The notes beneath the pieces were generated by a model that was not told the origin of the DNA, did no database searches, and saw nothing but the letters and a program-made list of their open reading frames with translations. A stretch of DNA of 63,988 nucleotides, counting the filler, from Reticulomyxa filosa (taxonomy: Eukaryota; Protista; Foraminifera), in the NCBI GenBank assembly GCA_000512085.1. It is 22 parts of 22 records of this genome, joined end to end, with 100 filler letters (N's around TTAATTAATTAA, not from the genome) between each part and the next. Parts side by side here need not be neighbours in the genome. Positions count along the whole stretch, not along the records: positions 5,136 to 8,583 come from ASPP01032929.1; 21 more parts are not named here. One strand, 5' to 3'. Within the stretch, counting starts at the first letter, position 1. Every line of letters starts with the position of its first letter. Below are positions 4,956 through 8,953 of this stretch, in pieces. The position numbers and the translations under genes are program-made.

Positions 4956-5269
4956 ATATGTATATATATATATATATAAATTTGTTAAAAAAAATAACCT
5001 ATGACATAAGGATAATATGTATCTTCTCGAATTCGNNNNNNNNNNNNNNNNNNNNNNNNNNNNNNNNNNNNNNNNNNNNTTAATTAATTAANNNNNNNNN
5101 NNNNNNNNNNNNNNNNNNNNNNNNNNNNNNNNNNNAAAAAAAAAAAAAAGGACAAAAGTTGTGCTTTTCAAACCCCTTTTTTTTTCCGCGTATTTTCGCG
5201 CGCAAAATAGCTTTTAAAAGCAATTGCGAAGAAAAGTAAAACAAAAAAAAAGTTTTTTATGTTGAACAG

Positions 5270-8200
5270 GCAGCAGCGGTTGGGGCGGTTCTTCAAGTAC
5301 AAATAGTACCAATAACTCTGGTGGCAGCTGGGGTTGGGGATCAAACGGCAATAACAATAGTAGTAACCCGAATAATAATGCGAACAAGAATCCCAATAGC
5401 AATAACACAGCTCGATTGGGCACAAAAGGCTTTGTTTTCAAACCGCATTTGGACACGAGTCAAGCCGGTGGCAAGCGTTGTTACTTTCAAAGCCTGTGTT
5501 ATTTAAAGGACTTTTGCAACAAATCTCCGGAAGAGCTGCGCTTTGAAGATATGTTTGGAAAATCGGCAGTGCCGACTGGCAACGACAGTAATTGGAATTG
5601 GGGAGGCAATACAGGAAATACAAGCAATACAGGTAATAATACAGGAAATACAGGAAATACAGGCAACACAGGCAATACAAGCAATACAAGCAATACATGG
5701 GGATCCAACAATACAGGCAACAGTTCTAACAATAGTACATGGGGAAGCTCTTCCAATGACTCATGGGGAGGCTCCAGTAGTGGTAGTAGTGATTCCTCAT
5801 GGGGAGGCTCCAGTAGCGGCAGCAGCAGTAGTAATAACAGTTCCAGCGGTTTGTTATTCAAAAAAAACAACGTACACACATACTTTGCAATGTCCACACT
5901 TACAAATTGGAGTTTTTTAAAAAATGCAAACTTTTTTTTTTTTTTTTAAAACAAAATAAAAAAAAGGCTGGGGATGGGGTGATGGCCCAAGCAATAATTC
6001 AAGCAATAATTCAAGCAATAATCCAAGCAATAACCCAAGCAGCAGCAATAGCAGCAGCAGTGGCTCTTCTTGGGACTGGAACGGCGGAAATTCCTCAAAT
6101 AGTACCAGCGGATGGGGAGGCAGCTCCTCGAACAACAGTGGATGGGGAGGCAATAGTGGTAATAGTAGCAATAGTGGTAATAGTGGTAATAGTGGTAATA
6201 GTGGCAATAGTGGCAACAATAATGGCTGGGGAAGCAGTAGCGGCTGGGGTAGCCAACCCTCATCCAACACGTCAAACTCAAGTTCGTCATCGTGGGGTAG
6301 CGATTGGGGCTGGGACAAGAACAAGCCCAACAACAATGGCAGTGGTTCATCCTCTTCAGGATCAGGTTCCTCCAATTGGGGATGGGGCAACAATGGCAGT
6401 GACTGGAATAGTGGATCCAGTTCCAGTGGCACCAGCAGCGGCAATAGTGGCTCGTGGGATTGGGGGGGTTCGTCGTCCTCCTCTTCCTCGTCATCCTCTT
6501 CTTCTTCCTCTTCTTCCTCTTCTTCCAACAATTCCAAAGGCAATGGTTGGGATTGGGGAGGAAGCAGCTCTTCCGGCTCCGGCAGCTCGAACTCGTGGGA
6601 CTGGGGGGGCTCCAGCAACAAAGGTGATAACAACCAAAATAAAAGTTCCAATGGATGGGACTGGGGAACATCCAAATCCTCCAATGGAGGTAGCGGTGGC
6701 AACTCGAGCGGATGGGATTGGGGCACCGGCAACTCGTCTAATTCGAGTAACACCAGCTCCGGCAACGGATGGGACTGGGGCACCAGTAGTTCCGGCAGCA
6801 GTTCCAATTCGGGATGGAACTTCAACAATAGTTCATCTTCCAGTAATGGTAGTGGATGGGATTGGGGGACGAGCAAATCAAGTTATTATCATATATCTGT
6901 ATGACAAGAGAACAGCTTTTTTTTTTTTTTACAAATAAAACGTTTAAAAAAAAAAATGGTAGACGGCACAAACCAACAATCAAGTGGAGGCTGGGACTGG
7001 GGAAGTGGAGATAAAAACAAAGACTCGTGGAATTTTAGTTCTTCAAACAACAACAACAATAATAACAACAATAACAACAACAAACAGAATAACAACAGCA
7101 ACAACGCAAACTCTTCCATGTTTGCTTCACATGCCCAAAACCCATACCAAATTGACTTGTCCAAAGGTCTGAAATTGTTACACGAACCAAAGAAAGTGCA
7201 GAAATATGTCGAGGAGAAATGTGACCACGGATTAACTGGCAATCGGGATCCTGCCTTTTGGAGTCAACAAGCACAATCCGTCAGCAGCAGCGTACCCATG
7301 GAATTCAAAAAAAAGGATTTGGCATTACCTATCGCATTGGCTTCGACTAAAAATGTTTCGTCCATTCGTGCAGAAGAGCGAGAAAAACTGATGACCAAAA
7401 AAACGCTGACCAACTCCAAGACAAGTTTGAGTGTGGCGACATTGGACAGCAATAAGCCAAGAGTTTCAAAGACTCAAACTCAACCGCAGCAAGATGTCAC
7501 ATCGATTTCGTCATTGCTTCAAGATGAGGACACGATTCAACCTCATTTAAATTTTTCCAGCATTGTCAAAGAGACATCACCGCCTCCAGATCGACAATCG
7601 ACACCTCCACTATCTACTCTTGACATAAGCGATCTGAGACCGCCCACTGATAGCGATTTGCCAAAGTTAACCAAACCCGGCTATTATTGCATTCCGAGTC
7701 TCAGCGATATGAGACAGATGGCAATAAACCAATTAAAACGTGTTCGAGATTTCACTGTCGGACGTGAAAATTATGGAAAAGTTACTTTCCCTGGAGAAAC
7801 AGACGTTCGAGGTATCGATTTAGACGCAATTGTTGTAATTGAATGGAGAGCTATCCAAGTCTATGATAATCATGATCCCAAAAAACCACCCATCGTTTCG
7901 CTTTTTATTTTCTATTTTACATTATTTCTTGTTCTTTTAGTTTTTACAATTTTATGTGTGTGTGTAACCAGGGACAAGGCCTGAACAAACCTGCAGAAAT
8001 TGAACTTTATCGAGTCGGTCCTCATCCACCACCGGATGCCGACAAAGATTGGAAACCTACACGTACTGAAATGCAAGAATTGTCGTTGAAATTGCAAAAT
8101 ATATGTGCCAGTGATGAAGCCACCACCTTTGATAGTTTCGATTTGACTCATGGTACTTGGAAATTTCGTGTACAACACTGGACTATTTATGGCGTTTCTG

Positions 8201-8274
8201 AAGACACTGAATGTATTTTATTGACCAAATTACCATCACTGCAGTTCCCCGTGCATATTAGATCCAATCGTTAA
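5270..8274 (+). CDS. NUP98: Nup98-like nucleoporin with GLEBS motif, WG/WDWG repeats and C-terminal autopeptidase (S59) domain; 5' truncated
   Basis: Exons 5270-5848, 5967-6881, 6963-7894 and 7972-8274 splice in frame. GLEBS-like FQSLCYLKDFCNKSPEELRFEDM. Autopeptidase motifs PKLTKPGYYCIPS, DFTVGRENYGKVTFPGETDVRGIDLD, KPPIGQGLNKPA and GTWKFRVQHWTIYG. Confidence 0.9.
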
Positions 8275-8953
8275 GAATGAATCATTCCAAGTTTTCATAC
8301 TATCAATTTGTTTGTTATTACTTCTTACTCATTTTTTAAAAAATTGCGATACTTCCTTTTCACTAAAAGAATATTTGACTCATATCTAAACTGTTTGCTG
8401 CACTCAAACTCAACCATTCAAGTTTTTTTATATAAATATAGAATAAAATAATGTTTTGTGGGTACTCTACGCTATGAAATGTCCTTAAAAAATCAATGTT
8501 ATAAATTTGAACAATTTCCTATCTACATTTTTTTAATGATGACGCCAGTGGATTCTGTAAACAGTTTTTTCAATTAAAATATCNNNNNNNNNNNNNNNNN
8601 NNNNNNNNNNNNNNNNNNNNNNNNNNNTTAATTAATTAANNNNNNNNNNNNNNNNNNNNNNNNNNNNNNNNNNNNNNNNNNNNCGTTTTCTTTTAATAAT
8701 ATTCTTACATTGTTGATGTTCCATCTATAATGATTCACTATTGATTTGAATAAAGTTTTATAAAGTCACAAAATATAATGCGCAGTTTTCATTTATTATG
8801 CTTTTCAATTCTTTAAAAAACATTAAGCATAAAATAAACACATTTTTCAATTTGTACTCAATCAAATCAAACAAGTTTAATATTAACTTACTTTTCTTTT
8901 AATCAAACTTTTCAAGCAAAAACACTTTCATTTCTTGTTCAACAAAAAATAAA

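Follow-up and report, generated by a model that had tools for sequence, protein, structure and literature searches.

Tryptophan repeats replace FG repeats in a Nup98-family gene of the foraminiferan Reticulomyxa filosa

A Nup98-family gene of Reticulomyxa filosa was found to carry tryptophan (W) repeats where the family carries FG repeats. This replacement, proposed in the original prediction, was borne out and was strengthened by a graded F-to-W series in relatives. The gene was located in a 63,988-nucleotide stretch of joined genome parts, hereafter the window, on the part derived from ASPP01032929.1 (5136-8583). This part contained the 3' portion of one plus-strand gene with four exons (Table 1); about 908 codons fell within it and the 5' end lay past its edge. 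As judged from its sequence, this is a spliced, conserved Nup98-family gene with a GLEBS, a repeat domain, a linker and an S59 domain. The gene continues beyond the span first assigned, 5270-7040, to a stop codon at 8272-8274; contigs from relatives ended near 8341-8347. Since the stop is 30 residues past the cleavage motif, there is no Nup96 in this protein. A sequence that is likely its ortholog (P0002) stops with an equally short tail and no Nup96. Three ORFs of the window had no exact entry in the protein collection that was searched.

Table 1. Features of the Nup98-family gene on ASPP01032929.1, in window coordinates. X1 to X4 are the four runs that supplied contigs from relatives.
Feature	Position	Strand	Remarks
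Exon A (internal; acceptor AG 5268-5269)	5270..5848	+	W repeats flank GLEBS on both sides; relatives' contigs cover 5544-5851
GLEBS (Gle2/Rae1-binding sequence)	5401..5550	+	Pfam PF21240 E 0.013 (below cut-off); custom profile 35.3 bits
Intron 1	5849..5966	+	GT-AG, 118 nt, phase 1, GC 0.22; missing in X2 and X4 contigs, in-frame join
Exon B, main W-repeat domain	5967..6881	+	29 W, 17 WG, 7 WDWG, 1 F; S/G/N spacers; X1, X3 and X4 contigs
Intron 2	6882..6962	+	GT-AG, 81 nt, phase 1; 81-nt skip in X3; X4 contig joins exon B end to 6965
Exon C	6963..7894	+	Final W motifs, poly-Asn, linker, first half of S59
Short conserved linker motif F..H..NP(Y/F/H)QI.L..GL	7121..7174	+	Closes repeat domain; common to W-type, mixed and F-type relatives
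S59 autopeptidase / pore-targeting domain, first half	7676..7891	+	PF04096 E 1.3e-19; PDB Nup98 E 3e-14
Intron 3	7895..7971	+	GT-AG, 77 nt, phase 0; skipped in X1 and X3 contigs; same position in both named R. filosa genes (L001, L005)
Exon D	7972..8274	+	Second half of S59, 30-residue tail, stop; no Nup96; PF04096 E 7e-13
HWT at autocleavage-motif position (HF↓S)	8176..8184	+	Family reads HFS

An exon-by-exon count gave 26 WG, 8 WDWG and 12 WxWG motifs, 1 FG, and no GLFG or FxFG, in agreement with the earlier hand count of about 25 WG, 8 WDWG and 1 FG. The lone FG (MFGK) was located at the end of the GLEBS, and outside the GLEBS the repeat region contained 41 tryptophans compared to 2 phenylalanines. 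The repeat domain, of which about 470 residues fell within the part, was long, disordered and of low complexity, with regular aromatic-Gly motifs and without leucine. Exon B (304 residues, 29 W, 1 F) contained 17 WG and 7 WDWG motifs, compared to means of 6.0 (maximum 16) and 0.02 (maximum 2), respectively, in 10,000 shuffles. Its aromatic fraction was 9.9%, against a median of 11.7% and a range of 6.6-14.7% in 47 FG domains, and its hydrophobicity (0.325) was at the low end of the FG-domain range (0.307-0.456). Aromatic clusters were spaced at 17 residues per cluster, compared to an FG-domain median of 10, and both the acidic residues (D/E, 4.3%) and tryptophan (9.5%) exceeded the maxima of the compared FG domains (1.4% and 0.7%, respectively). 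Every tandem repeat within the exons had a period divisible by three. At 5987-6041 a 12-nt repeat encoding SSNN was shorter in the X2 and X4 relatives, an in-frame variation in spacer length that kept the motifs. A homolog search with the WDWG portion of exon B, which is of low complexity, scored nothing, and exons A and B had no match as queries in the Protein Atlas.

The exon structure was compared with contigs from relatives obtained in four runs from four studies, mostly about 85-98% alike; the run types were guessed (X4 as 'DNA?') and none was the window's own sample. All three introns, which are short, AT-rich and GT-AG, were missing from these contigs and the joins were in frame. This result confirmed the introns originally predicted: intron 1 was missing in two runs, intron 2 was skipped in one and its flanking exons joined in another, and intron 3 was skipped in two. 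In X4, overlapping contigs extended from the end of the GLEBS through exon B and another contig joined the end of exon B to exon C, while X3 contigs carried on through exons C and D. Contigs that lack the three introns and link GLEBS, repeats and S59 are a strong argument against a chimera or a wrong frame. Both had been named at the outset as ways in which the prediction might fail, and the in-frame joins, chained from GLEBS through the repeats to S59 across overlapping contigs of four studies, spoke against them. One contig had a loose end before 5279 which, read by hand, translated in frame into another Trp motif; the missing upstream exon is therefore probably also W-type.

It is highly improbable that the W repeats stem from an artefact, be it a wrong frame, a chimera in the assembly or reassignment of TGG to Phe. 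An artefact would fit with the shortness of the contig, the guessed run types, and the fact that no run matched with full identity and no single contig crossed the whole gene. It is opposed by overlapping contigs of four studies whose spliced joins are in frame, by the mostly synonymous differences to the relatives, and by the same architecture in another R. filosa gene, ETO19622. Among 40 of the 173 differences, those listed, 26 of the 38 coding differences were synonymous and none was at a Trp codon. Codon reassignment was rejected: in exon D the column where the family conserves Trp is encoded by TGG, and the one where it conserves Phe by TTT.

The S59 domain of Nup98 anchors the protein to Nup82/88 or Nup96, and its GLEBS binds Rae1/Gle2. 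Searches for these domains were run exon by exon; for folding, the whole S59 domain was represented by that of the natural ortholog P0002. Intron 3 cut Pfam PF04096 cleanly in two: exon C covered model positions 2-76 (E 1e-19) and exon D positions 78-148 (E 7e-13), and the two halves matched the Nup98, Nup145 and Nup116 domains in the PDB. Furthermore, the predicted structure of P0002 (pLDDT 90) matched the autoproteolytic domain of human Nup98 (E 3e-12). The GLEBS was below the cut-off with PF21240 (E 0.013), and it scored 35.3 bits with a profile built from the Nup98s gathered in this analysis, compared to a maximum of 6.3 in 500 shuffles; its predicted position, embedded between W repeats, was thereby upheld. 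A PDB search with the GLEBS gave no match. At the cleavage position the protein reads HWT where the family reads HFS (64 HFS and 8 HFT among the hits with a readable motif). HWT keeps the histidine and a hydroxyl nucleophile, and Trp replaces the Phe of HF↓S(T); a Thr nucleophile is found in Chaetomium Nup145 (PDB 5hb6). In an unrelated branch of the tree, P0149 and its cluster have HWS at the cleavage site, so the F-to-W change there arose elsewhere too.

The nearest named proteins were encoded by two R. filosa genes, ETO19622.1 ('nucleoporin, partial') and ETO19917.1 (RFI_17303). In the S59 tree these formed a clade with the ASPP01032929.1 Nup98 and with P0002 (support 99), a metagenome-collection sequence with 60% identity, HWT and the same short tail. 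Identity of the S59 domain to the two named R. filosa genes was 43-58%, and they are therefore paralogs or distant orthologs. ETO19622.1 has WNWG, WDWG and WDFG repeats upstream of S59, the same intron, and HW at the cleavage site. In the public model of this gene (L005:1-1130) the intron at approximately 837-905 is translated and the true end is missing; HWN in this frame is followed by a stop within four codons, and with Asn at the nucleophile position cleavage is unlikely. RFI_17303 shares HWT and the intron position, but has no repeat domain. In this gene (L001:2455-3194) a Met lies just ahead of S59, no repeats were found upstream, and the contig ends within a C-terminal extension. No published description of the R. 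filosa W repeats was found in the literature search.

Nup98 proteins of the W type also occur, on sequence evidence, beyond this gene, in R. filosa ETO19622, Kipferlia bialata and a metagenome eukaryote. In 75 S59 proteins that had 300 or more residues upstream, 1944 FG and 59 WG dipeptides were counted. The exceptions among those 75 were K. bialata KIPB_006057, the ENA metagenome eukaryote sequence P0012 (9 WG, 8 FG, HWT, Nup96 downstream) and one Logan protein (8 WG, 41 FG). No FG-type Nup98 from the foraminiferan clade was present among the 150 best hits. Of two metagenome DNA scans, the first gave no match and the second only an ordinary FG-type Nup98-96. Locus L002 (2537-9051) contained a spliced Nup98 with mixed FG/WG repeats, a GLEBS and HWT, followed by Nup96. 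In the Logan sequence P0115 the WG units were segregated by position, clustering before and just after the GLEBS with FG units elsewhere.

Evidence on the origin of the W motifs came from the sequences next to the foraminiferan clade in the S59 tree, namely P0051, P0009 (locus L009), P0012 and P0044 (group support 93/92); the branch uniting the F-type and W-type relatives was below strong support. The ratio W/(W+F) in the repeats rose from 0.07 in P0051 (FNFG) to 0.29 in L009 (FNWN, WNFG, WDFG, FSW), 0.62 in P0012, 0.82 in R. filosa ETO19622 (WDFG, WDWG) and 0.97 in the ASPP01032929.1 Nup98 (WDWG). GLEBS features were common to P0051, L002 and the ASPP01032929.1 Nup98, and the linker motif at the end of the repeat domain was present in P0051, L009 and P0012. 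The W motifs occupy the places of FG motifs: they flank the GLEBS on either side and stop at the linker motif that F-type relatives also have. Because the series is graded within one aromatic-x-aromatic-G scaffold, the W motifs would be FG motifs converted to Trp, and the simplest reading is that, within FxFG motifs, Trp took the place of Phe step by step. The direction is taken to be Phe to Trp because FG is the state of almost all outgroups. In L009 (1-900) a frameshift, probably an assembly error, separates the upstream mixed F/W-repeat ORF from the S59 ORF.

The repeat domain of K. bialata KIPB_006057 (GIQ84545.1; L003:2650-8357) contained 23 WG compared to 3 FG, with AFGA and AWGA units within one array. 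Like the ASPP01032929.1 Nup98, this is an S59 protein of the Nup98 family in which WG far outnumbers FG. It differs in its uncharged A/T/P spacers, simple xWG units, retained HFS and long C-terminal part (Nup98-96); no GLEBS was detected in it, and it belongs to a different supergroup. In the free S59 tree Kipferlia was placed apart from the foraminiferans; an AU test did not reject a joint clade (p = 0.27). Given the taxonomy, the motif context and the intervening F-type relatives, the Kipferlia W repeats are probably convergent with the foraminiferan ones.

The order of repeats with GLEBS, linker and S59 is that of Nup98/Nup98-96 (human Nup98, yeast Nup116/Nup100/Nup145N; PF04096), and S/G/N/T spacers, aromatic density and the S59 fold (P0002 model) are likewise similar. 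The differences are Trp for Phe, the absence of GLFG and Leu, acidic WDWG, wider spacing, HWT for HFS, and a 30-residue tail in place of Nup96. On balance we favour, as fairly probable, a predicted function of the W domain as a Trp-based equivalent of the FG barrier that also docks transport receptors. The protein would be anchored to the pore by S59 and bind Rae1/Gle2 through the GLEBS, and the disordered repeat domain would play the part of an FG domain in which Trp serves as sticker. The WG and WxWG motifs, reached stepwise from FG and FxFG, would cohere into a permeability barrier and dock transport receptors. The aromatic density, which at 9.9% compared to a median of 11.7% is inside the FG range, speaks for such a barrier; the more acidic composition, wider spacing and low hydrophobicity of exon B relative to FG domains speak against it. 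A stronger Trp sticker may offset the wider spacing, the absent Leu and the acidic Asp of WDWG. In vitro, YG phases that lack Phe remain selective barriers (Ng et al., 10.1101/2022.10.14.512266). The same study reported that a GLYG phase excludes native receptors, that phase separation is lost at moderate negative charge, and that there is strong selection against Trp and acidic residues in Nup98 repeats (10.1101/2022.10.14.512266). Since native receptors are shut out by the GLYG phase, and Trp and acidic residues are selected against, a W barrier predicts co-adapted receptors. A wider proposal, which we regard as doubtful, is that the foraminiferan pore barrier as a whole went from Phe to Trp with co-evolved receptor pockets, that other protists may have switched independently, and that the W domain may also serve as a platform for Argonaute.

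The original prediction had offered either a Trp-based pore barrier or a nucleoporin that tethers Argonaute. The graded F-to-W series in one scaffold favoured the barrier, and the tether was neither supported nor excluded by the WG/GW dos score, which did not discriminate. The W repeats might be Argonaute/Piwi hooks that hold small-RNA machinery, together with Rae1, at the pore, alone or beside a barrier role; we consider this unlikely. WG/GW hook domains (GW182/TNRC6, NRPE1, SPT5-like, Tas3, Wag1p/CnjBp) likewise have WG/GW in G/S/N/D-rich disorder and a 'strong' score. The composition of the W domain, rich in G, S, W, N and D, fits such domains (PMC2910046). With the matrix of that study, in which 'strong' is above 150 half-bits, exon B scored 436 half-bits; its 1.43 per residue lies close to the upper limit for converted FG domains (0.34-1.48). 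However, FG domains converted F-to-W in silico were also 'strong' (median 168), and hook and barrier are thus inseparable by composition. AGO binding in vitro is disrupted when W is changed to F (PMC2910046); a change in the opposite direction could therefore create it, and the existing paralogs could free the ASPP01032929.1 copy for such a role. Against this, the W domain lies at the FG position of a nucleoporin, where its motifs, apparently derived from FxFG, replace all FG motifs and are no added module; the intermediates mix F and W within single motifs, and F-to-W also occurred at the cleavage site, on a residue that is buried and cannot act as a hook.

At least two further S59 genes are present in R. 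filosa, and the ASPP01032929.1 Nup98 may therefore be a specialised paralog. We consider it quite unlikely that such a copy leaves the general barrier to other FG nucleoporins and instead nucleates a pore-attached or nucleoplasmic condensate, either as a platform for mRNA export or, as in ciliates, for a pore specific to one type of nucleus. The R. filosa S59 genes of the clade (at least two, one repeat-less and one ending in HWN), the missing Nup96, and acidic, widely spaced repeats that depart from barrier rules are in its favour. Nevertheless, no FG-type Nup98 of the clade that might carry the barrier was among the 150 best hits, and the W-type genes of Kipferlia and L002 are of the Nup98-Nup96 type and probably essential copies.

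Tetrahymena has repeat-variant Nup98 paralogs, MacNup98A (GLFG) and MicNup98A (NIFN). Like the ASPP01032929.1 Nup98 they are lineage-specific repeat variants among paralogs, but the ciliate variants keep Phe and alter its flanks, whereas here the aromatic residue itself is altered. MacNup98A was included in a survey of 666 Nup98 domains, in which Phe was the least variable residue, the median was 43 FG/GLFG motifs, and Rhizaria were outside the experimental coverage (PMC4283134). No description of a W-type Nup98 was found in the literature searched, most subscription journals being outside that search, and this type is apparently undescribed so far; the wide earlier reporting that would have weakened the original prediction was likewise not encountered in the searchable literature. 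Ng et al. ask why the barrier uses FG (10.1101/2022.10.14.512266). The FG motif has been regarded as invariant in nuclear pores, and a natural, conserved WDWG Nup98 breaks the rules of Phe invariance and of Trp and acidic-residue avoidance; as a natural experiment, Trp in place of Phe bears on why phenylalanine is the normal choice for the pore filter. The natural intermediates (FNFG, WDFG, WDWG) and the probably convergent Kipferlia repeats are ready substrates for phase and receptor-partition assays, which would probe receptor-motif co-evolution and the interconvertibility of FG barriers and GW Argonaute hooks. Nucleoporin searches based on FG would miss W-type proteins.

Several other Nup98 hits were unusual. 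P0110, P0144, P0133, P0106 and P0020 were Phe-rich and nearly without FG, and the cluster of P0144 included the ciliate Fabrea salina. P0101 appears to join a polyketide-synthase-like region to S59, probably through an error in the gene model, and P0003 had two S59 domains in tandem.
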